Origin: Schizochytrium sp. TIO01
Taxonomy: Eukaryota; Protista; Bigyra: Labyrinthulomycetes
Assembly (NCBI GenBank): GCA_004764695.1
Contig: SMSO01000035.1
Span: 2,988,040 to 3,052,039, forward strand
Direction of reading: 5' to 3'
Length of the DNA stretch: 64,000 nucleotides
Below the pieces are notes generated by a model. The model saw only the letters and a list, made by a program, of their open reading frames with translations, was not told the origin of the DNA and searched no databases. The position numbers were made by a program, and so were the translations under genes. Positions 3,407 to 20,527 of the stretch are shown here, piece after piece; positions within the stretch are counted from its first letter, which is position 1; each line of letters opens with the position of its first letter.

Positions 3407-4470
3407 TTTTAATTCTTTCTCGGTCTGAGTTTATCTCTACTTACTTCTTTGTGAATGTCGTTTCAAGATCTTAACTTTAAAGGAGGGGAGGATAGATTTA
3501 TTTGCAATCAGTTGGTAAGTCTTTCTTTTCGCATCAGCCCAAAAAAGAAAAGGAATTCAAAAGCTTGATCAAACCCTTCGTTCTGCCAACGGCTCTAGCA
3601 CCAGTCTAAGGCCTTGCGCGAACACACCAAAAACCAAAAAGAGGCAGCAAACGTCACTCCATTGAAGGCCTTTGCATGTGCATCAGCTGCAGCTTCTTTG
3701 TGAATCAATTAGACAAGGAACCAAATTTCACAGAAGCTTTTGAAGCGTCCACTTATTCATTACACCGAAGCAGTCATAAGAGTGATCTGAGATCATGTTT
3801 TTTCTCCTTCGTTCGTGCCTGCAAATGGCAGGTACTTTCAACAGTCGCTTTACAAAACCTAAGAACTCTTCACTCAGAGTCTCATCCACCCGCTCTCACT
3901 CTACACATGATCAGTGTGTACCAAAAGCTCCTTATGTATGCTGTATTTCAAGAGCACCTCCCTCACCGATCGTTTGAGAAAGCCTCTTCTCTTCCCAACC
4001 CTGGGTAAACTAACACTCACAAAGAAAGAAATTACCAGCTAGAGATAACGATTTGCTGTTTCTACTCTCTGCTGTTCCAATCATTGAATCATTTGATCAA
4101 TCTCTGCTGCATTGGGTTCTGCATGCGCTAACCCAGTTCTTTCTACTACTCCAATTGAGTAATCCTCAAAAAACTAATTCTCTATTTACATTGATGTGTT
4201 TTCATTAACACTCTCCCATAGGACTATCAAATCCAATTAATACAATCTATATATACATTAATCAACCAATGTAGAGCACATTCGATCATACCACGCGGGT
4301 AACACCTCATCTCATTCGCACTGAGAAGTAAAGTCGCGTAGGGCCGGGTCAGTAGTATGATAGGGGACTGCATGCGAAGCCCCGGTGTTGAATGTTTTTT
4401 TCTCCTGTTATTCTTTACCCTAGCACTACAAGAAAGCAACTCCACGGTTGATATCACAATATAATACACA

Positions 4471-5510: not shown

Positions 5511-5542
<32 letters not shown>
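5511..5542. repeat. (CT)16 microsatellite upstream of the LRR-kinase gene
   Basis: Read directly. Confidence 0.95.
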
Positions 5543-5643: not shown

Positions 5644-8600
5644 ATGACTGTGGCAAAGAGCATTAAGGACATCACAGAAGATACGACGGAGATAGTGTAA
5701 GTGCACGATGCAGAAGGGAGGAGACAGAAGAAGGAGGCATCGCGTCGTCGATGTGTTGTAGTAGTCAGCTTTGTAGAAGAAGAATAGTTTTGAACTAGTA
5801 GTGGCACTCATGAAGAAGTTGGAAATGGCATATACTTACTCTCACTTGTTCACAAACAAACAAACAAACAAACACAGTTTTCGTGGGAAAAGAATTGGTC
5901 ATGAGGGCGCAAAGGCCGTCGCAAAGGCACTCGAGGGATGCAAGAACCTTCAAACTTTACAGTACGTTTGTGGAATCATCCACGAGGGAAAGCTATCGTA
6001 ATAGGCAGGACCAAGCTTTTTCTTTCTTTCTTTTGAGTTCTTGGTGTTTGTAGTACTGCTGGTACACTACCTAAGTAGTTTACGTAGTTGGGTACGCAAA
6101 GAAAGGCAAAGAAGTCTTTTCTTTTTTACAAAGAGAAGAAGGAAATCTATATAATTTGATACGAGGCAGCAGCAGCAGCAGGAGAAGAAGAGCTGATTGC
6201 TTTTTATTGTGAGGAAAAACAAAACAAAACAGGATCAACTGACTGGACCTGTCTTTCCTGACAACGAATGAACAAAACAAACTTATTCATTTATACTCAC
6301 AGTCTTTACAAGAACAACATTGGCTCGGAGGGCGCAAAGGCCGTCGCAAAGGCACTCGAGGGATGCAAGAACCTTCAAGAATTGTAGTACGTTTGTGGAA
6401 TCATCCACGAGGGAAAGCTATCGTAATAGTCAGGACCAAGCTTTTTCTTTCTTTCTTTTTAGTGCTTGGTGTTTGTAGTACTGCTGGTACACTACCTAAG
6501 AAGTTTACGTAGTTGGGTACGCAAAGAAAGGCAAAGAAGTCTTTTCTTTTTTACAAAGAGAAGATGGAAATCTATATAATTTGATAGGCAGCAGCAGCAG
6601 AAGCAGCAGAAGAAGAGGTGATTGCTTTTTATTGTGAGGAAAAACAAAACAAAACAGGATCAACTGACTGGACCTGTCTTTCCTGACAACGAATGAACAA
6701 AACAAACTTATTCATTTATACTCACAGTCTTGGTGCGCACGACATTGGCGATGAGGGCGCAAAGGCCGTCGCAAAGGCACTCGAGGGATGCAAGAACCTT
6801 CAAACTTTGTAGTACGTTTGTGGAATCATCCACGAGAGAAAGCTATCGAAACAGGCAGGACCAAGCTTTTTCTTTCTTTATTTTGAGTGGTGTTGGTACT
6901 AATGGAAAGGAATCAAAACGAAAGCACTGCTGGTACACTACCTAAGTAGTTTACGTAGTTGGGTACGCAAAGAAAGGCAAAAAAGTCTTTTCTTTTTTAC
7001 AAAGAGAAGAAGGAAATCTATATAATTTGATAGGCAGCTGCAGAAGAAGAAGAAGAGCTGATCGCTTTTTGTTGTGAGGAAAAACAAAACAAAACAGGAT
7101 CAACTGACTGGACATGTATTTCCTGACAACGAATGAACAAAACAAACTTATTCATTTATACTCACAGTCTTTCTGGCAACAACATTGGCGATGAGGGCGC
7201 AAAGGCCGTCGCAAAGGCACTCGAGGGATGCAAGAGCCTGACTCAACTTGGGTACGTTTGTGGAATCATCCACGAGGGAAAGCTATCGTAATAGTCAGGA
7301 CCAAGCTTTTTCTTTCTTTCTTTTGAGTTCTTGGTGTTTGTAGTACTGCTGGTACACTACCTAAGTAGTTTACGTAGCTGGGTACGCAAAGAAAGGCAAA
7401 CAACTTTTTTCTTTTTTAGAAAGAGAAGAAGGAAGCGCAAAAGGGAATCTATATAATTTGATAGGCAGCAGCAGCAGCAGAAGAAGAAGAGGTGATTGCT
7501 TTTTATTGTGAGGAAAAACAAAACAAAACAGGATCAACTGACTGGACCTGTCTTTCCTGACAACGAATGAACAAAACAAACTTATTCATTTATACTCACA
7601 GTCTTGGTTTGAACCACATTGGCGATGAGGGCGCAAAGGCCGTCGCAAAGGCACTCGAGGGATGCAAGAACCTTCAAGAATTGTAGTACGTTTGTGGAAT
7701 CATCCACGAGGGAAAGCTATCGTAAGAGTCAGGACCAAGCTTTTTCTTTCTTTCTTTTGAGTGCTTGGTGTTTGTAGTACTGCTGGTACACTACCTAAGT
7801 AGTTTACGTAGTTGGGTACGCAAAGAAAGGCAAAGAAGTCTTTTCTTTTTTACAAAGAGAAGAAGGAAATCTATATAATTTGATACGAGGCAGCAGCAGC
7901 AGCAGAAGAAGAAGAGGTGATTGCTTTTTATTGTGAGGAAAAACAAAACAAAACAGGATCAACTGACTGGACCTGTCTTTCCTGACAACGAATGAACAAA
8001 ACAAACTTATTCATTTATACTCACAGTCTTGAGGACAACAACATTGGCGATGAGGGCGCAAAGGCCGTCGCAAAGTCTCTGCACAAAGCATGTCCTTCTG
8101 TTAAAATCTAGTAAGTTCCGTTCCCTCTGCTGCTATTCCCAGCTTGTGCAGAGCCTTGCCTTCGCTGGTTCTCTCCATGTCTCCATATGGACTTGTGAGA
8201 AGGCCGTCTTTAAATGCGTTCATCGTTTTTCTAACAAGCGCTTTTATTCTCTTTCTTTCGTTCATTGATTTATCAAATGCAGCTATGACAAATGTTATGG
8301 AACTCCTAAAGAATTATTCGAAAGGGTGTGTTCTCCTGGAGAGGATATTGCAGATTTCTCGTCAGAGCTCGATTCCTATGCTTCCATAGAGGCTGCAGAA
8401 AACGAGCCTTCTGCAGAGCCCAAGAAAGAGCAAGACGGCATTGATGGCGCCGGGCCTGCTACTTTGGATGGAACTGGGTAAGTTCATGCGGTCAGTCTTT
8501 GTTTGGGATCGTGTAATTATTCATTCCACGAATTGTGTTATTGAGATATAAGGGATCCTAACTTTTGCCTCTGCTTTTGTTGCTGTTTCAACATCATTTT

Positions 8601-11325
8601 GCTCTTTTGCTTACGTCTTCTGGTTCGCCCCAGGGAACGGCCGGATGGAGCAAGCGTGAGTTTCGCTGATGTGGTGCAGCTTGCCAAGGAAGTCTCGGAC
8701 TTGCGCGCAGACCGAGGCGGGCTCAGAGGAAACTCTCTGCAGACTGGGATTGCCTTGCTTGAGGAATTCATAGGATCGGCGATCCAGGGCTACTTTGGCC
8801 AAGTGAAGTTGCGACAGGTTTCCGCTGACATCAAGAACTCCAAAGAGAGTCTCGACGCGCTACAACGCCAAATTCGTGCAAGCTCTGCTGATGGTTTACC
8901 CAGTCTCATCGAAAAGCGGAATGCTGAACGAGACCGCCTACGCTCACTTATGCAAGTCGTGTACCCATGGGTTCGCGCCGACCTCTGCGAAAGCGATGAG
9001 AGTGCAGTGCGAGAATTCAAAGTGAGAGTTAAAAGTTTGGTAAACGATCTAAAGATCGACCTTGCACCAGTCGATGAAGAGACCAGCACAGACGACTTCA
9101 AACACTGCCAAGAACTCGCTGTTCAGGCCGGCAGGTGCGTCGAGGAGTATAAGAGGAATGGAGAACCCCGAGCAAACAACATTGGCGAACGAAGCCAACA
9201 AGCTGCAAAATGTGTTGTCTCTCGGTTGTCTGAGCTAGAACTTGGTGATGGATTATGGGTTGCTCTTAGGGTACCTGAGCAGGCCATGGATCTCGGACCC
9301 GAATTATCTGAGCTTGAGCGTGCTCTTCAAGAAGAGATTGAAGCGCTTCAAGGAGATACACTTAGTGCCCACTTATCCCAGATACTTTGCGCAATAAGTT
9401 CAATGCTCGCCCGTTTCGAATTATACTCTGAAAACACTGTGTTGAATGACGCAAGCAAGTGCACACCACAAGAGCTCTCTGAACTGTATGACTATGCATT
9501 ACTGGGTTTGAAAGAACCTTCTGTCTTAGATGTTGAGGAATTATACCAGAAACTTGACAAGTCGAAAAAAGCGACAGAGAGTTTAAAAAGAGCTAGAGAA
9601 GATCTTGAAGCTGAGGACCTGGAAGAGGATGAGCGAGAGCACTATAGAAGTCGAATCAAGAAACAGAAGCGCATTCTTTCTAAAGGCAACCCTATTGAGC
9701 TTAGCAAAGTTTTTCGCCATAAGCTTGCTGAAACTCTGCAACACGCGCAGGAACATTATCCTGAGTTGTTGCAGGATAGAGCTTGGCTAGAAAGGCTTCA
9801 TGTAACTGCAGAGGGTGTTTTTGAAGTAGCTTGTTTTGACCTTTGGTTGACGAATGTGACTGTTTCGGACTTTCAGCGTGTCGGTGAGCCCCTATCCTTT
9901 AGATGTGGCAAGAAAGTCCAAAAGGTTCTTGACAACGTTGGAAAAAAGGTTATGGTTCTCAAAGAGTTTCAACTTGGACATCCAAGTCAATCGAAAACTT
10001 TCTACAAGCAGGTTGCCAATCTGGGCAAAGTGGTGTCCCAGCACGTGATACGTATCACTGGTGCTTTTGTGGACATGACACATGGAGAGCCGCGTGGTTG
10101 TATCGTCATGCCTTTCTACGAGCGAGGTGACCTGGCCAAGTGGATTGAGAGTCATCCTAACGAAGGCAAAGAAGCACGTGACCGACTTGCTGTAGGTCTG
10201 CTTATCGGTGTGGCGGATTTACATGCCCACGGCATTGTGCATTGTGACATCAAACCAGAAAACATTTTCCTCACAAGCAACGGGACACCATTAATCGGTG
10301 ACTTTGACGGCATCAAGGTTGCAAACTACACTGCAACTTACACATCACTTCAGGCAACGCCACGGTACGTTGCCCCTGAGTTGCAGAGTGGATCTGTAGA
10401 TAGGTTTGAAACAGCTATGGATATGTACTCTGTGGGCATAAGCTTAAAAGAGCTGTATCCCACTGAACGGACTGCTGCAATGCAGACACTTATCGAAGCT
10501 CTTACCGCGACAGACCCGAGCCAACGCCCAAGTGCTCATCAAGCACTCCAACATGAAGCTTTTGGAGCCCCTCAAATCCCTGCCAAGATATGTCTTGTAT
10601 GTTTGGAGGAGCATCTGCTTTCTGAAGGCACGAGCTGTGAGGAGGGGGACTTCCTTTGCAGAGACTGTATCGAAACTGCAGTAAAATCGGCAGCACAACC
10701 ACTTGCTCACGTAAGGGTGGATGCTGATGGGGCGATGGCATGCATGAAACCTGAATGTAGTGGAAGGATATCAGGTCAAGAAATCACCCGTCTTGCACCT
10801 ACTGCTTTGAATCATCTTTTGTTAATTGCGAAGACAAAGGCAGAAAATGAGGCAGCAGTTTGGGCTGAGAAAGAAATCCAAAGGCGCATAGCAGAAGTTT
10901 TACGTGCAGGAGAACAAAATAGTGACGCAGAGCATCATTTACTACATATTCAAGAGAAGATCTTGAGCACATGTTGTCCGAACTGTAATACTTATGTTCA
11001 TGAGTTTGAGGGTTGTTGCGCTGTAAAATGTGGTAATAATGCTTGTGGACACCTCTTCTGCGCTTGGTGCCTTGGGTATAGTTCTCAGGATGAAGTTGTT
11101 TGCCATGCTCATGTGAGAACCTGCTCAAGAAGACTTGGGCAAGACCTATTCTTCCCTGATTCATTCGAGCAGGTTCGTGAAGCGTGGCGGTTGCTCCGTG
11201 CAGAGCGTCTGCGTGAGTACTGGGATGCAAATATACAAGACATAAATCTTCGGCTCGTTCTGAAAGAATTACTAGCACCTTTAATAACACCAGATATTGT
11301 TGGCGAAGATTTTAGACTGGAATAA
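5644..11325 (+). CDS. LRR (6 RI/NLRC3-like repeats) - helical/coiled-coil - Ser/Thr kinase - RING1/RING2 (RBR-like) fusion protein, 1147 aa, 9 exons
   Basis: Exons 5644-5696, 5878-5961, 6303-6386, 6728-6811, 7168-7251, 7602-7685, 8027-8110, 8283-8477, 8634-11325. All introns are GT-AG and phase 2, and the 3444-nt frame is open. LRR consensus LxxNxIGDEGAKAVAKALEGCKNLQxL. Kinase motifs VLKE, HCDIKPEN, DFD, APE, DMYSVG. C-terminal CLVC..C..CRDC..CMKPEC and CPNC..EGCCAVKC..CGHLFCAWC. Confidence 0.88.
5878..8110 (+). repeat. Tandem array of exon+intron cassettes (6 x 84-nt exons, 5 near-identical 341-356-nt introns; period 425-440 bp)
   Basis: Exon starts at 5878, 6303, 6728, 7168, 7602, 8027. 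Each intron starts gtacgtttgtggaatcatccacgag and ends acttattcatttatactcacag. Confidence 0.97.
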
Positions 11326-13319: not shown

Positions 13320-16300
13320 TCAGTTTGGCGTTAAAGCATATTCAAGTGTAAGATATGAACACAAATTGTTGCACATTGCTGATATGCTTTCGATAGCTTG
13401 GTTGGCTTGATCGATTTGAGATTCGAGCTCTTGAATCCGGGTTTGTTTTGCTAGATTGTTAGTATCTAAATTTTCTTCCTCTCCGTAGTCTTCTTCATAA
13501 TCCTCTTCGTAATTCCCTTCGTACTCTTCCTCTTCATTCTGGTTTTCTAAGTGTTCGTTTCCCTCGTGATTTTCGCAATTTTCCTCTGACAGTATAAGAT
13601 CGAATCTCCGTCTTTTGTAGTTTCGCGGAAGATTGTAGTGATTCGAAAGTGCCAAGATACCCTGAAATTCCTCCAGCAATTTGTTACGACGGGGAAGGAC
13701 GCCTTGAAGTTCGTGAATTCGATTCGTGAGATCCAATTCTATGCGCAATTGCCTAAACAAGATAAGTGATTGATTCATGTGTGAGTTCTACTGAATTCTT
13801 CTCTTCATCTATAATACCCTGTAACTTACTTGGGATCCCCATCAATACTGTACGTTTTGAATTCTGCATTAGTATAGTTCATTTTGCCTGTGCTATGGTA
13901 CGTCTAACTTACTCTAGCCTGGTAAGGGTCCAATTATCTCGGAGAGTTTCAGCAAGGGCTTGATGGCCCTCATCCCCAATATGATTCGATCGCAAACTGC
14001 CAGAAAGTTAGATTTCCAGTGTAACGAGTTATAGTTTATCATTCTCTGTCGTAACTTACTTAAGCCATTTTAAAGCTTTGTTCGACGCCAATGCACGCAC
14101 AAAAGGACGCGCACACTCAGGGCCAAGATCATTACTCTCAAGACTTTGTTTTTAACCGGAAGCACGGGCAGTGGAAGTATGTCAGAAAGTCAATCGCGTA
14201 GAAGAGAAACAAAAAATCTTCTGAAACCTACTGAAGTGTTTCGAGCGTAGTGTTGACGCGAAGCGCACTTGCAAGAGCACAAGCTCCTTTTGATCCGATG
14301 TGGTTGTAGTAAAACCTATGTGAAAATATTGAACCACGTCAGTTGAAGTTTTATTGCGCAGCTTCAAAATTTGCCCGACTTACACAAGTGACTTGAGTCT
14401 AGTATTGGTTCGAAGTGCCTTTGCAAATGCACATGCTCCTTTGTTTGCGGTGTTGTTCTCGGAGAAACTAATGCCGTGGGAAAATATATAAACAAAAGAG
14501 CAGTTAGGTGATCAATTGTTTACATGGAAATGAAAGTGTTGAAATAACTTACCTCAAAGCCTCCAAGGTGTTGTTTTTCTCCAATGCTTGCCCGAGAGCC
14601 CGTGCGCCTTCGTCTCCGAATTGGTTTTTTCGAAGACTAAGAAGCCAGATAGTATAAATAATAATGGAGATACAATTAGTCAAGAGATCGCGAATGAACA
14701 TTCAGGACTCACTTACTTGAGATCTGTCAAGGTTGAATTGGTTCTCAGGGCAATTGCGATCGCAAGAACTCCTTCATTACCAATGTCATTTACCTGCAAA
14801 CTGTTTTTAGGGATGTCGTTGGTAAGTAAGTTTTCAATAAACGTGAGTGCAAGCAAAGAAAGTATGTTATAGTCTTTGCTACTTTAGTAAAACTTACTCG
14901 AGGACTGATAGCGATGTTTCAGGGCCTTGAAGCGCACGAGCTAATACGCTAGCACATTCATTATTGATATTGTTGCCGAATAAGCTGAAAACATATAAAA
15001 CACAGCTTTGGTTAGAAATGAGTGAAATGCTTCAGCAAAACAGTTCAGCGACTTACTACAATTTCGTAAGAGTGGAGTTTACTAATAAAGACTCGGCAAC
15101 GGCTAGAATTCCTTCTGGACCGCACGAAATACTCTCAATGCTGCAATCGGAAATTCACATTTAATTCCGCACACGAATAGATCACATGGAGGAAGATAAA
15201 ATAATTGTCAATGAGAAGTCCTGCCTATTCCAGTGAGATGGCTAACTTACAAAAGTTCACACAGAGTTTGATTATTAGCCAAAGCCTGTCCCAATGCACG
15301 TGCACTCTCGATGCCCAATTCATTTCTTGAAAGTCTATAAATATTTGCAAATAAATCATTGCCAAGGTATCCCGCCAAGTTAGCTTTTTCTTTGCCCTCA
15401 ATTTTCTAAAAGTCGAGGGTTTGCGGAGAATCCAACCATGAATATATGCTTGCTCAAAACGTACACCAAGGTTTCTAATCCTGTATTGATCCGTAATGCC
15501 TGTGCAAGCGCGCATCCGCCGCTCGAAGTAATTCCATTGTTATTTAAGCTGCGATACGATAAATAGGTTAGCGATTAGTTTGCGCATTTTCCCATGACGG
15601 AAAAATTAATAAAGTCATCTGTATTGTTAACGCACTGTAAAGACTTCAACGAGGAGTTTTCTGTTAAGGCTTTTGCAAGCTCATTGGTGCCTTCGTTGCC
15701 GATATTGTTCCATGATATACTATTAAACAAAGAACGACGTCCAGAGATTAGTCTTGAATTAGTCAGGTTGAATATCCAAAATGCCTTCACGGAAAAACTT
15801 ACTCAAGGCTGAGCAGAGATCTATTTAGTTTTAAAGCTTCTGCAAGCACTTCTGCGCCCCTGGACCCAAGCTCATTTCGGGAAAGGCTGCATGATGAACA
15901 CATCAAAGACCATACATGGACTACTGTTAGCGATTCGTAGAATAACAAGGGGGCATCAAGTACTTACTTTAAATCTATCAGGACTGAGTTGAACTGTATG
16001 ACTTCAGCAATCTTGATTGCTGATTCGGCCCCAAGCTCGTTGCTCCAAACACTGTTTTGAAAAGTAAGTAAAGGGCTATTGCACATTTCACGCTGGAGTT
16101 GAACTTACGCGAAAGACTGCAGCGTTGTATTATCACGCAATGCATTTGCAAGTGCGACTGCACTTTCAGCACAGATAGGGTCATCTGCAATGCTGAAAGT
16201 GGTAGAGTAAGCGCATATATTTCATAAGCCAAGTTAGTAACCAATTCGAGGAATGAGGATTTTGAATATACGATCGCCTTCTGCTTACCTCAGGGATTTC

Positions 16301-16882
16301 AATGAAGTATTCACTCGCAAGACGTCAGCAACTGCGGATAAGCCGCGCAGGCTGAGATCGTTGCTCCATAATCTAAAAGAGACCATATCAATACACGTTG
16401 ATTATCACTTGGTTAGCTGTCGCACAGTATTGAGACACCTCAAAAGGGAACTCACTTTAGTGTTTCCAGGGAGGCGTTTGCTTTTAGGGCATTTGCAAGC
16501 ACACACCCGCCTTCTGAACCCATACTGTTATGGGAGAGGCTATGATATGATTCCAATAAATTCAGAGTTAGCTTATTCTCGATGATACAAATGAATAAAC
16601 CCGCTTCAGTTTGCTTAGATGAGACATCTGCACTCTACGTGTGACAAAGAGAACGTACCATAGGCTTTTCAATAATTTTTCCTTTTCAAGAAGCGATGCA
16701 AGTTCTTGCATTTCCTCGACGTCAAGTTCCACAAATTGAAGACTGTTACCATAATTTTAGAGTAAGCTTTTCCCATCCAAAAATTCAAATTACAAGAAAA
16801 AAGGGAAAACGTACACTACCTCTTCAGCACTTTTATTATGAATAACCTCGAGGGCCTCTCCAAGCGAATTCACGCGGACCAT
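13320..16882 (-). CDS. LRR protein (17 RI/NLRC3-like repeats) with acidic and coiled-coil C-terminus, 649 aa, 20 exons
   Basis: Exons 16882-16815, 16742-16659, 16539-16456, 16372-16289, 16192-16109, 16051-15968, 15886-15803, 15719-15636, 15548-15465, 15334-15251, 15140-15057, 14984-14898 (87 nt), 14800-14717, 14636-14553, 14467-14384, 14315-14232, 14143-14060, 13996-13913, 13847-13830, 13752-13320. All are GT-AG and phase 2, giving a 1950-nt open frame. Example repeat: ISWNNIGNEGTNELAKALTENSSLKSL. Confidence 0.9.
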
Positions 16883-19078
16883 TTTTTAGTAGTCTTAGAT
16901 ATAGTTCCTCTTGTTGTTTGTACGCTAGAACCAGTTGTCTCTGTTGCTATCCTGCAAAAGGTTGCCCTATACTTTTTTGGAGGCGGCTTCTCTGTAGTTA
17001 TTTCTTGATCTGCGCGCGCGAGTTTGCTTTCCTCTTTGACGCGAACGGAGTAGATAAGCTTAACGAAAGCAGCAGATTAATCAGCCCTTCTCGGGTTTCT
17101 TTCTACGGGAGACGTATACTAGTCCCAGTATAGGAGAAGGCAAGGGGGAGGAGAAGAGGTTGACGACACAGGAATAAGGCTCGTTGTTATCTCAGTGTTT
17201 TGTCGACTGCCTGTTCTGCTCTAGCAAAAGTGTTTTGACTCCGTTTCTGTGCCTCCTTTGAACTTTTCCAAAATTAGTTGATGTGTGACTAGCTAGGTAC
17301 TAGAAGGTACTATTAGTAGTTGCCTAGGTTAGCTGCTACTAGGACTACTACCTGGTATTTATTATATCATGTTCATGGCTGAGTAAATGTCACTATTTAT
17401 GATAGACTATCAAAGGCAATGTGACCTATTTTCATGAGTTCTCACCTCCACCCAAGCAATTGTCAAGGGTTGGCGAAATTATGATGCCTCTCTGCTTTTG
17501 ATAGGTAGCGCTAAGAATTTAACACAGTTTTACTTAGGTCAAGGCTCGAGTAAAGACACACTTAATCTTCAGAACATGCGTAGGATTAGTGACCTGTTTT
17601 GTCGATGACACAGACACAACTTTGCTCTATTCAGGCAACAGTGTTGGAAAGATACACTTATATTATACTTCTTGATTTCGCATTTGCATGCTTTAGGTCT
17701 TGAAAGATGGAAATTACTAGAATGCATGATTTTGATTTTGATGAGTGATTACAAATATCAAAATCTGCAAGACTGGATGTTACTTACACTCATCTCAAAG
17801 TGGTGAGACCATTTTCTAATCAGAATTAGTAGTAGTCCACAGTGATTTGAATCCATACTCCTCAATCTGCTAATTCAAGCTCTGGAAAATACAATTTCCG
17901 TTTCCCATCACGACATTTGCCTACGAATGCTATGTTGGCTACTTTATTTAGCTCATAGTTGTTGTGCAACAAAAAGAAGGAGATTACCGCTGTTTCTCAA
18001 GATATCAATTCCGATCCAGTTTAGCTAATCTGATGCTCAGCAAGTTTTTCCAATTTTCGAGATGGAATTTTATTTAGGTCCCATTTTTTATTACGTGCTC
18101 AAAAGGTCAAAGAATTAATAACATCAGATGACTTCAACTGAGTACCTGGTGTTATTATCCTTGCAAATAATATGTCATTCCAGACATGTACCTTGAGTGA
18201 AAGTAACCGAGAACGCGGGCGTAACATATATTCATAGTATAAACTTCTATCTTGAAGAACATACTACTCCAAGCTTGGATGGGTGCGTGCTATTCCAAAT
18301 GCAAAGACTCTTATACTAACCCATTACTAGTGTACCTACATTTGACTTTATATGTAGATCCAGACTTGGAGGGGTGTACTTAGAGTCTTTAAGAATATAT
18401 TAGTCTATGACCAACAAAGGTTACTTGTACCTCTAAAGGTATATACTAGTAGTAGTGCAAGCTTAAATGGCGTTCGCTAGATCGCAGGTAGATAAAACCC
18501 GCTGCAGCATATTAAAAACCGACTGAGGACAAGTGTGCCACCCAACCAAGAGCTACTCGCCACATGATTCTCTCCATATCCCTTGCCCCGTGCTTGTTCT
18601 ATTTTGTACCAAGACATATATGTTGCTCAGTTCTTTTACCTGCGGTGATAATGCATCAAGACCCTTATGTACCCCCTCTTCTGAAAAGCTTATCTTATTA
18701 ATAATATCTCATCCAAGCTTGGATAGGTGCAACACACAACTACATGCAGATTGGTTCAGGATAGGAGCTTCATGTCCCAGTTTCTTACACTTAAAACACT
18801 TTCAATCTCAAGGTCGCTAAATCTGCTCAAGTTTAAGCAAGTTCGTAACTGAAGGCTAGATGCTCTTAATGCCCAATTGTATATAAATATCGACTCAGGT
18901 AGGTAGTTTTGAATAGTTAAAACAAATCCAAATTGTGGAATAACCAAAACCGAATTGAGACAACAAGTTTGTGTCATTCAAGCTCAACACTGACCAAACG
19001 TTCGAGAGAACTCTAGTAACAAGAGAAGAAGACGAGGAGGCTTAGTTGGATTGTCTCTACATTGTTGCTTTTGTGAAC

Positions 19079-20527
19079 ATGAACCTGCCATTCAAACGCA
19101 AGATGGATTTTGGAGATGACCAGCGCTCATTCCAGCGTGTGAGACAGAGTGCAGACGATGAGTATGAAGACCCGTTGTTTGAATGTATTGAATGTATTGA
19201 ATGCATTGAATGCATTGATCGAATTGGACTTGATGTTGTCAATTTATTCGACTCACCCAATGAATCTAGTGAGGGTGGCGAGCTCAATTCCCCTGGTGAC
19301 CAAAATCATCTGTCCAACTCGTCACCAGACAGTTTCTCTCAACCACCGCCTCTTGACAATCAAAATTTGAACACCACAAACGTGTCGGCTAGATTGGAGT
19401 TCGGTCCCTCTTCCACGGTGGATACATCAAACGTTGCTAGATTGGACGTTGCGCGCTCATTCCAGCGTGTGAGACAGAGTGCAGACGATGAGCATGAAGT
19501 TCCGTTGTTTGAATGTATTGAATGTATTGAATGCATTGAATGCATTGATCGAATTGGACTTGATGTTGTCAATTTATTCGACTCACTCAATGAATCTAAT
19601 GAGGGTGGCGAACTCAGTTCCCCTGGTGACCAAAATCATCTGTCCAACTCGTCACCAGACAGTTTCTCTCAACCACCGCCTCTTGACAATCAAAATTTGA
19701 ACACCACAAACGTGTCGGCTAGATTGGAGTTCAGTACCTCTTCCACCGTGGTTTCATCAAACGTTGCTAGATTGGATATTGCCCCAGACTTGCAATTCGA
19801 TTATAACAATGCCATAAATTCTACTACCTCCACTTCTCTCGACCAGCACAATAACTCAAGGAGAGAGCGGCAAACTTTTGCAAACGGATACTCACATAGA
19901 AGTCCAGAGTTGTCTAGAGTACCAATCCAAGAAACTATCCAGGGAAACTCTGTTCGGTTGGAGAAACATTCTTTCTCAACCCCAGTTTATCACAGCTACA
20001 CTACCTATGGATGCACTTACGCTGTATTGAAAAGCAGTACGTTGCCTCGAAGCATCAGTGCTTGTATCGACAGTAAGACGTGGCAAGGTAGGTCTGCGCG
20101 AGAGTATTGTGCAGTCTCAATCCAAGAAAATCCTACATGGATTCGCCAAAGCAATTATTCGCACTTTGAACTTACGATGGAATCACAAGAGCGTCCAGGT
20201 CCTTCCATTTGTAAAGTTGTGGGCAGCTCAAAAAGTCGAACAAATATCGAGATTATTGGGGATTTCATTGTGATTCAGTTCGTCTGGAAGCCTGTAAATG
20301 GCTTCAAGCTGTTTCGCCCAGAACAACATCACCAGAATAAGGTCCGTGTATCTATTTTGTGCGCATTTGATGATGATAATCTCGTTTGCGTCCCGATTGA
20401 AGCCCCTGTTCATGTATTCTCGAAGCGCGATGGCAAAACTAGGATGAATGATCTTCCTCCAGAGCACATGAAAGGACACGATAGCATGAAGGCATATATC
20501 GCGTCTCTACGACCGACACGATGCTAA
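19079..20527 (+). CDS. Hypothetical protein: duplicated acidic/Ser-Pro N-terminus plus beta-rich C-terminal domain (possible Ig-fold DNA-binding domain)
   Basis: Long ORF with first ATG at 19079. The function is inferred only from weak motif resemblance. Confidence 0.7.
   Translation: MNLPFKRKMDFGDDQRSFQRVRQSADDEYEDPLFECIECIECIECIDRIGLDVVNLFDSPNESSEGGELNSPGDQNHLSNSSPDSFSQPPPLDNQNLNTTNVSARLEFGPSSTVDTSNVARLDVARSFQRVRQSADDEHEVPLFECIECIECIECIDRIGLDVVNLFDSLNESNEGGELSSPGDQNHLSNSSPDSFSQPPPLDNQNLNTTNVSARLEFSTSSTVVSSNVARLDIAPDLQFDYNNAINSTTSTSLDQHNNSRRERQTFANGYSHRSPELSRVPIQETIQGNSVRLEKHSFSTPVYHSYTTYGCTYAVLKSSTLPRSISACIDSKTWQGRSAREYCAVSIQENPTWIRQSNYSHFELTMESQERPGPSICKVVGSSKSRTNIEIIGDFIVIQFVWKPVNGFKLFRPEQHHQNKVRVSILCAFDDDNLVCVPIEAPVHVFSKRDGKTRMNDLPPEHMKGHDSMKAYIASLRPTRC
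19123..19782 (+). repeat. 330-bp in-frame tandem duplication (2 copies), each with a (gaatgYatt)4 micro-repeat
   Basis: gcgctcattccagcgtgtgagacagagt starts at 19123 and 19453; the copies are nearly identical. Confidence 0.95.

Follow-up and report, generated by a model that had tools for sequence, protein, structure and literature searches.

Leucine-rich repeat cassettes with homogenised introns and hypervariable exon edges in a family of protist kinase genes: candidate recognition modules

A one-repeat-per-exon array at the start of a spliced gene

The window analysed here is a 64,000-nucleotide stretch of contig SMSO01000035.1 from Schizochytrium sp. TIO01. At positions 5878–8110 of its forward strand it carries an array of six 84-nt exons, each of which, as read from the sequence, encodes one 28-residue leucine-rich repeat (LRR) of the ribonuclease inhibitor (RI) type. 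The array forms the N-terminus of a spliced gene on the same strand, which comprises an ATG at 5644, the six LRR exons, a linker exon and a last exon of 2692 nt. The borders of the LRR exons are AG on the 5' side and GT(A)(C/A)GT on the 3' side. The first base of every LRR exon is the third of a split codon, which makes the introns phase 2. Tandem Repeats Finder reported a period of 425, 5.1 copies and a score of 3477.

LRR exon 1 (5878–5961; FRGKR...QTL/H, the slash marking the exon end) is followed by cassette intron 1 (5962–6302), LRR exon 2 (6303–6386; LYKNN...QEL/Y), cassette intron 2 (6387–6727), LRR exon 3 (6728–6811; LGAHD...QTL/Y) and cassette intron 3 (6812–7167). LRR exon 4 (7168–7251; LSGNN...TQL/G) has an alternative, "LTxL" type of 3' block and is succeeded by cassette intron 4 (7252–7601), LRR exon 5 (7602–7685; LGLNH...QEL/Y), cassette intron 5 (7686–8026) and LRR exon 6 (8027–8110; LEDNN). 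The five introns measure 341, 341, 356, 350 and 341 nt and are 92.2–98.5% identical in pairs, the third being the most diverged (92–94%), while LRR exons 1–5 are 75–92% identical in pairs. Exon 6 keeps the family core only through ...EGAKAVAK and then departs into a C-terminal cap, SLHKACPSVKI. A first-pass annotation of this DNA, made from the letters alone, had described six such exons separated by near-identical introns. Coordinates, splice borders and intron identities bear this out, and the peptide strings that it listed (FRGKR, LYKNN, LGAHD, LSGNN, LGLNH and LEDNN; QTLH, QELY, QTLY, TQLG and QELY) are all correct.

Exon variation within the array is confined to the exon edges. In exons 1–5, 28 of 41 edge positions are variable as against 0 of 43 core positions (Fisher p = 1e-12). 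An invariant core therefore exists as proposed, but it is common to exons 1–5 and not to exons 2–6. The further claim that the exon codons diverge more than the adjoining intron DNA was confirmed by the counts of variable columns, 28/84 in exons and 30/335 in introns (p = 1e-7).

RI-type LRRs have 28–29 residues, and the 28-residue (84-nt) unit recurs in 141 of 171 family exons. The consensus LxxLxLxxNxIGxxGAxxLAxAL fits this class. In the sampled exons L1, N4, I6, G7, G10, A11 and L18 are conserved at 95–100%, as are L24 and L27 of the preceding repeat. The LRR exons were searched singly, not as the joined spliced protein. LRR exon 2 scored 16.4 bits with Pfam LRR_6 (E = 0.009), below the gathering score of 23.4 because the exon boundary splits the repeat. 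Against the PDB, LRR exon 2 alone gave several matches per RI-type chain, including DRC5 (4.8e-6) and 5irm/5irl (~4e-4), an entry named only "Uncharacterized protein" in the table, which we take to be rabbit NOD2. An RI-like protein and RanGAP1 were also matched.

Splicing was seen in contigs from three RNA-type runs of three studies. A GT..AG joint at 8110/8283 is present in runs X1 and X18 and one at ~8477/8634 in runs X1, X17 and X18, and none of the splice joints occurs in the DNA-type run X3, the run types being guessed rather than annotated. The contigs also carry LRR-to-LRR joints, in which the exon end is followed by T-CTT with other variable codons and then by the constant core. The joint-bearing contigs are spliced transcripts of the window gene and its paralogs; as contigs, they document that such transcripts exist and where they are spliced, but neither their level nor their strand nor a single molecule of full length. 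The first-pass annotation had named a lack of spliced transcripts as grounds for refutation; spliced joints were found in all three RNA-type runs.

Upstream of the array, exon 1 (5644–5696, 53 nt) begins with the ATG, holds 17 codons (MTVAKSIKDITEDTTEI) and ends in the first 2 nt of a split one; it is 92–97% identical in paralogs. Intron 1 (5697–5877, GTAAGT...CAG) is of another type than the cassette introns. Downstream of the array lie an intron (8111–8282), exon 7 (8283–8477, 195 nt), which encodes an acidic linker, intron 7 (8478–8633) and exon 8 (8634–11325), whose 896 codons plus stop encode a helical region, a kinase and a Cys-rich tail. The protein kinase domain (9913–10458; Pfam Pkinase, 2.4e-30) has the motifs VLK441, HCD536–538, PEN, DFD556 and APE580, with the catalytic Lys, Asp and Asn present. 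It is a non-RD kinase (HCD) in which DFD replaces DFG. Pfam matched kinase families only on the 896-residue exon and no family on exon 7, so that neither ROC-COR nor NB-ARC was found in them.

The Cys-rich tail (10591–11124) contains a RING1-like CLVC... and an Rcat-like CPNC...GC...FCAWC pattern. These Cys patterns are kept in paralogs and in P0001 and P0002, which with P0003 are kinases of another organism with 51–59% identity. With an AlphaFold2 model of low confidence (pLDDT 62) as the Foldseek query, the top matches were nearly all RBR ligases, with RNF216 (7.5e-4) followed by HOIL-1L, HHARI and parkin, at TM <0.3. A weak match to the parkin Rcat was obtained as well (E = 0.2). Pfam gave no IBR or RING match on the tail, and a PDB profile search for it was dominated by kinases owing to full-length rows in the alignment. 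The structural matches and the Cys patterns suggest that the tail is probably a ubiquitin ligase; in view of the missing IBR match it is called RBR-like here and not an RBR proper.

No signal-peptide-like hydrophobic stretch was found in exon 1 (Kyte–Doolittle maximum −0.24), and no signal-peptide-like or membrane-span-like stretch in any piece of the protein. The LRR–kinase–RBR-like protein is therefore probably intracellular. A perfect (CT)16 microsatellite (5511–5542) precedes the ATG by ~100 nt and likely falls in the 5' leader or promoter.

A dispersed family with homogenised cassettes

Cassette intron 2 has at least 330 matches of 95–100% identity on 16 contigs of the 64-Mb genome, always ~425 bp apart. 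A first look for the LRR exon gave ~440 candidates genome-wide. For the kinase exon, at least 51 paralogs were scored, with 59–89% amino acid identity; nearly all have intact frames of ~925 codons, and each has an array directly upstream. Every fetched array adjoins a paralogous kinase exon, upstream of it. An introner or other mobile intron was rejected, since all listed intron matches lie in arrays of ~425-bp period beside kinase exons and never in unrelated genes. A scan of Joint Genome Institute metagenomes for cross-species loci returned only one unrelated kinase fragment.

A 5S rRNA gene (4278–4396, forward strand; Rfam RF00001, 96.5 bits, E = 1e-19) lies 1.25 kb upstream of the ATG. It is the single 5S gene in the 64 kb, with none downstream of the array within the window. 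In 14 of 16 fetched paralogous loci a 5S gene likewise stands upstream on the same strand. The recurrence of 5S gene, array and kinase exon defines a dispersed module of ~7.5 kb, made up of 5S, LRR array, linker and kinase/RBR-like exon.

Diversity was assessed in 28 arrays with 171 internal exons, of which 141 are in-frame 84-nt exons, and in 138 introns. The number of internal exons per fetched array varies from 3 to 10, with 18 in one probably broken array. The array at the start of C24 (C24:1-12000) recurs at the end of C32 (C32:2889500-2901525) with no difference in its variable codons and with scores that match, so that the two contigs overlap or the locus was duplicated very recently. 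The C24 locus was dropped from the statistics as a duplicate, which leaves 138 exons in the stop count given below.

The window gene was compared with 16 paralogs segment by segment. Identity is 99.7% for the 5S gene, 86% for the spacer between 5S and ATG, 94.5% for exon 1 with intron 1 and 97.2% for the cassette introns. From there it falls to 91.6% for the intron after the array, 90.7% for exon 7, 89.7% for intron 7, 85.8% for the kinase exon and 75% for the 3' flank.

The cassette introns have a mean nucleotide diversity (pi) of 0.029, and the exon core has a synonymous divergence (dS) of 0.026 and a non-synonymous divergence (dN) of 0.027. For the kinase exons dS is 0.27 on average and 0.40–0.54 for the window gene, with dN/dS of 0.2–0.3. 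Comparison of intron pi with kinase dS shows that the non-coding cassette DNA is 10–15 times less diverged than the synonymous sites of the neighbouring exon. Intron distance is 0.032 within an array and 0.034 between arrays on different chromosomes. The cassettes are one genome-wide pool under concerted evolution, for which recombination would be the cause. The description of the module as recombining, made in the first-pass annotation, is thus well supported: introns from at least 28 arrays on 16 contigs are ~97% identical as against ~86% for the kinase exon, repeat number varies, and the variable blocks described below show almost no linkage, either among themselves or with the introns beside them.

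Hypervariable blocks at the exon edges

Among the 141 in-frame internal exons, 127 are distinct. Exon pi reaches 0.55–0.70 at codons 2–3, 0.5–0.6 at codon 8 and 0.4–0.7 in the last 12 bases; elsewhere it is 0.00–0.07, save for codon 5 (0.11–0.27). Codon 2 encodes 17 different residues, codon 3 encodes 16, codon 26 encodes 13 and the split codon 10. Values of pi above 0.3 are found in 3 of 335 intron columns and at 20 of 84 exon positions (p = 2e-12). Simple recent duplication followed by drift was rejected as an explanation, since the diversity of the variable sites exceeds that of the introns 15–25-fold.

When the repeat is written as LxxLxLxxNxIGxxG, variability falls on x2, x3 and x5, at the exon end, and on x7, x8, x10 and x13, at the start of the next exon. 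As these residues straddle the joint, the intron cuts through the variable strand. The seven variable codons (2, 3, 5, 8, 25, 26 and the split codon) are predicted from the repeat consensus to lie on the concave face. The hypervariable binding face suggested at first reading accords with the contrast between pi of 0.4–0.72 at 20 exon nucleotide positions and 0.029 in the introns. In 140 of the 141 exons the sequence opens with T; the split codon accordingly reads NNT, and a stop cannot arise at any junction.

Block distance and adjoining-intron distance do not correlate (rho 0.02), even for introns less than 1% apart, and blocks 13–63 nt apart are only weakly associated. LRR exon 2 has an identical counterpart (84/84 nt) on contig C6 whose flanking introns are ordinary, with 10 mismatches against a median of 9. 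Joint movement of this exon with its introns was thus ruled out. Codon 8 (TCG/TCA or GAT) and the 3' block (CTT-CAA-... or CTG-ACT-...) are di- or oligomorphic, without intermediates, a pattern that fits old variants kept and reshuffled.

Open frames are strongly maintained. A stop was found in 1 of 138 exons, compared with 34.4 ± 4.1 expected from column shuffles, a depletion of ~34-fold. At codons 2–3 the prevailing residues are N, S, G, Q, Y, R, E, W and D, and aliphatics are nearly absent. In the 22 closest exon pairs, single-base changes in the variable codons are 23 non-synonymous and 0 synonymous; the pairs are non-independent, and the count is 14:0 without the split codon, whose counted positions are almost always non-synonymous.

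The per-codon dN/dS comparison proposed in the first-pass annotation was also carried out. Variation is not even but concentrated at the exon edges, and the variable codons are saturated (dS 1.16 and dN 1.55 at codons 2–3). Saturation of whole blocks fits old retained variants, and it fits targeted mutation as well. The leucine codons 24 and 27 of the 3' block combine high dS with low dN, so that the excess divergence belongs to short DNA blocks, while the leucines are under purifying selection. Positive selection, as first claimed, is shown only in part. The saturated dN/dS does not prove it; strong indirect evidence comes from the stop depletion (1 versus 34), the 23:0 changes and the polar and aromatic bias of the residues.

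Three further features of the blocks were observed. In several arrays on C30, C32, C33, C34 and C8, the last or next-to-last internal unit tends to share Y-N-N-S at codons 2, 3, 5 and 8. This signature hints that units at the 3' edge are conserved by position; the window gene does not follow it. A 99-nt exon variant carries a 15-nt G/T-rich insert, with runs of G and T, exactly at codons 2–3. The insert adds five codons of Gly/Phe/Trp type to the variable strand, and was found in L035 (C24:4391, 5279), L032, L010 (C30:9761294) and L034 (C33:2003424). Many exons of the C7 (18 units), C23 and C12 arrays measure 82, 83 or 85 nt (C7:1069191-1076475, C23:32517-35552 and C12:17507-18430; loci L004–L026, L012 and L014), owing to indels of 1–2 nt that fall almost only in the variable blocks and never in the core. 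These odd-length arrays may be decayed arrays or pseudogenes that reveal the local mutational process, or they may reflect consensus errors from piled-up unit reads.

Interpretation, rival explanations and related systems

On the observed anatomy, copy number, homogenisation, hypervariability, open frames and splicing, we consider it probable that the array belongs to a germline family of ~50 intracellular LRR–kinase–RBR-like sensors, with cassettes that are homogenised and shuffled and a binding face that is diverse. The symmetric 84-nt exon together with its intron would form a 425-bp cassette, of which ~330–440 copies are spread over many chromosomes. Unequal crossing-over and ectopic gene conversion would exchange it continuously among these copies. 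Such exchange would keep the introns and the helix-coding core ~97% identical and let repeat number vary. Two short exon-edge blocks, corresponding to the x positions of LxxLxLxxNx and to the loop after IG, would escape homogenisation and be shuffled as nearly independent units, with selection keeping them diverse and open. The outcome would be a germline repertoire of differing binding surfaces on a constant scaffold. The kinase and the probable ubiquitin ligase joined to this scaffold would then send a signal or tag whatever has been bound. From this architecture we infer binding and an immune or non-self role, that is, a candidate immune receptor. The lack of correlation between blocks and introns, the weak association among blocks and the ordinary introns around the identical C6 exon favour frequent exchange, with break points in identical DNA, together with selection for diversity.

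Several points weigh against this interpretation. Because dN/dS is saturated at the variable codons, it is uninformative there, and synonymous sites are saturated as well at the leucine codons 24 and 27 (dS 1.40, dN 0.05). Conversion tracts short enough to spare islands of 6–12 nt would be unusual. Some arrays (C7, C23) have frame-breaking indels exactly in the variable blocks. The LRR fold and the assignment of residues to the concave face rest on consensus, not on a model, the sampled exons are 171 of ~440, and the RNA or DNA type of the runs is a guess.

Saturation of this kind is where a programmed diversification would have to be considered, in which blocks of 6–12 nt would be rewritten, either through a targeted mutator or through conversion templated by the ~440 cassettes. 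The rewriting might take place in clonal or somatic time, as in the assembly of the variable lymphocyte receptors (VLRs) of jawless fish or in the gene conversion behind antigenic variation. Introns and cores would then serve as homology arms, and a mechanism would generate the diversity that selection would otherwise only preserve. In the blocks, saturation extends to all three codon positions and to the synonymous sites of the leucines, while DNA 4–10 nt away differs by ~3%. The independence of blocks from flanking introns, even from nearly identical ones, points the same way, as do the ordinary introns around the identical exon on another chromosome and the restriction of indels in broken arrays almost entirely to the variable blocks, although those indels may be consensus artefacts of long arrays. 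Nevertheless, codon 8 (TCG/GAT) and the 3' block (LQxL/LTxL) lack intermediates, which speaks for the shuffling of old alleles and not for fresh mutation, and the duplicated C24/C32 locus has identical variable codons. The germline genes are complete and open, unlike the incomplete VLR genes, and no mutator or diversifying enzyme was found beside the array within the module examined. Programmed diversification is thus regarded as improbable; if it were true, a unicellular protist would rewrite LRR binding-face blocks within clonal lineages.

The same anatomy could also serve a role outside immunity, the LRRs selecting endogenous substrates of the kinase or ligase, or mediating self/non-self recognition between cells in mating or fusion. 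Ubiquitin ligases commonly recognise their substrates through LRRs, allorecognition systems too are marked by hypervariable families, and the protein has no detected signal peptide or membrane span. We nonetheless judge such a role unlikely. Endogenous substrates would favour a conserved binding face, and surface residues that are near-random across ~50 paralogs, together with dynamics like those of subtelomeres, are found more typically in arms-race families. It is very unlikely that the repeats are non-coding structural spacers of rDNA or chromosome ends with incidental open frames. A 5S gene does adjoin the array, but stops are ~34-fold depleted, the framework LRR residues are invariant, and GT/AG sites and the 84-nt length are kept in 141 of 171 units. 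The spacer reading is further at odds with the spliced joints and with the contiguity of the array with a kinase open reading frame under purifying selection. An assembly artefact, in the form of a collapsed or expanded repeat, was rejected as scarcely credible. Long near-identical arrays are hard to polish, some show odd indels of 1–2 nt, and contigs look composite; the window array, in contrast, spans just 2.2 kb with its own codons in each unit, the same design recurs in 28 independent arrays, and transcript contigs have exon–exon joints at the predicted sites.

The germline repertoire proposed here has a close parallel in brown algae. The host of the window genome is, like Ectocarpus, a stramenopile. 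The Ectocarpus LRR-ROCO and NB-ARC-TPR genes encode one LRR per 72-nt exon, with exon shuffling and positive selection on the concave face (PMC3341825; PMC11378527). In these algal genes, as in the present family, each LRR occupies an exon of its own whose length is fixed and whose phase is symmetric; repeat number and concave residues vary, gene clusters and pseudogenes occur, and a role as candidate immune receptors is proposed. They differ in that the exons here are 84-nt RI-type units rather than 72-nt units of the 24-residue plant-like type, and in that a non-RD kinase and an RBR-like module take the place of the ROC-COR GTPase or NB-ARC. Gene conversion is unmentioned in the Ectocarpus paper, and homogenisation of introns across the genome is not described there; here the introns are ~97% identical genome-wide, and the genes are linked to 5S rDNA. 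The analogy with Ectocarpus ROCO genes drawn in the first-pass annotation consequently stands for the design and fails for membership, there being no ROC-COR or NB-ARC and the output being kinase plus RBR-like. If the present interpretation is correct, it extends exon-per-repeat candidate immune receptors beyond brown algae to an output of kinase and probable ubiquitin ligase.

The second parallel is with the LORE-TEARS of Aurantiochytrium limacinum, repeats of 366–529 bp whose Group 5 consists of ~5 units of ~421 bp between 5S genes (bioRxiv 10.1101/2023.06.15.545109). They were read as non-coding structural spacers of rDNA and chromosome ends, and LRRs are unmentioned in the preprint (bioRxiv 10.1101/2023.06.15.545109). 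The array resembles Group 5 in period (425 versus ~421 bp), copy number (5.1 versus ~5) and an adjoining 5S gene, a likeness drawn from the published description. TTAGG telomeres and a genome of ~62–64 Mb are also shared with A. limacinum. In contrast to Group 5 as published, each unit here consists of an exon and an intron from a protein-coding gene that is spliced. Group 5 lies between two consecutive subtelomeric 5S genes; the window has one upstream 5S gene, and 5S genes flank many paralogs. None of the papers searched links thraustochytrid repeats to LRR genes. What the present analysis adds is the 425-bp class, its fixed link to a kinase/RBR-like exon and to 5S, and the quantitative contrasts in divergence. 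If the present interpretation is right, a class of "non-coding" chromosome-end repeats that is likely the published one would be the coding scaffold of one of the protist's largest gene families. Were the host an Aurantiochytrium, a culturable organism reported with mirusvirus-like elements, innate immunity in a protist, and germline versus programmed diversification, would be directly testable.

Animal RI-type sensors (ribonuclease inhibitor, NOD2 and other NLRs) are likewise intracellular, with 28-residue repeats and exon boundaries that match them. Ribonuclease inhibitor and NLR genes have two repeats per exon; the present array has one. It also differs from the animal sensors in its homogenised introns and hypervariable residues, and no NACHT or NB-ARC was found here. 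With the VLRs the family shares a constant LRR scaffold, diversity confined to the concave face (as predicted in the present case) and many genomic donor cassettes. VLR germline genes, however, are incomplete and assembled somatically, whereas the germline gene here is complete, open and spliced. Plant LRR receptor kinases combine an LRR sensor with a non-RD kinase in large, fast-evolving families; they are transmembrane proteins with extracellular 24-residue LRRs. The protein described here has the same pairing of LRR sensor and non-RD kinase (HCD) and differs in its RBR-like tail and the lack of a signal peptide or membrane span. Set among these systems, the family would offer an unusually clean natural case of concerted evolution and maintenance of diversity a few nucleotides apart.

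TTAGG telomere repeats are present in the genome, and many 5S genes lie near contig ends. Internal TTAGG repeats occur at C4:412544 and C4:1184324, and the strand of the 5S genes flips mid-contig on C6, C8 and C13 (on C6, + at 27 kb, − at 1139 kb, + at 1203 kb and − at 2577 kb). Owing to these internal repeats and strand flips, several contigs have the look of chromosomes fused at their ends. Members of the family on C34 change from the − strand (2.83 Mb) to the + strand (2.89–2.99 Mb), which suggests a junction of two chromosome ends ~100–160 kb from the window gene.

The window holds a second gene with one RI-type LRR per exon at 13320–16900 on the reverse strand (for example NQFGDEGARALGQALEKNNTLEAL and NDIGNEGVLAIAIALRTNSTL). 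Its repeats are diverged and its introns unique, and it has the appearance of a counterpart to the cassette array in which homogenisation is lacking. Further along, at 19123–19776, two copies of a 330-bp tandem repeat are 96% identical and contain inner 9-bp repeats of TTGAATGCA.

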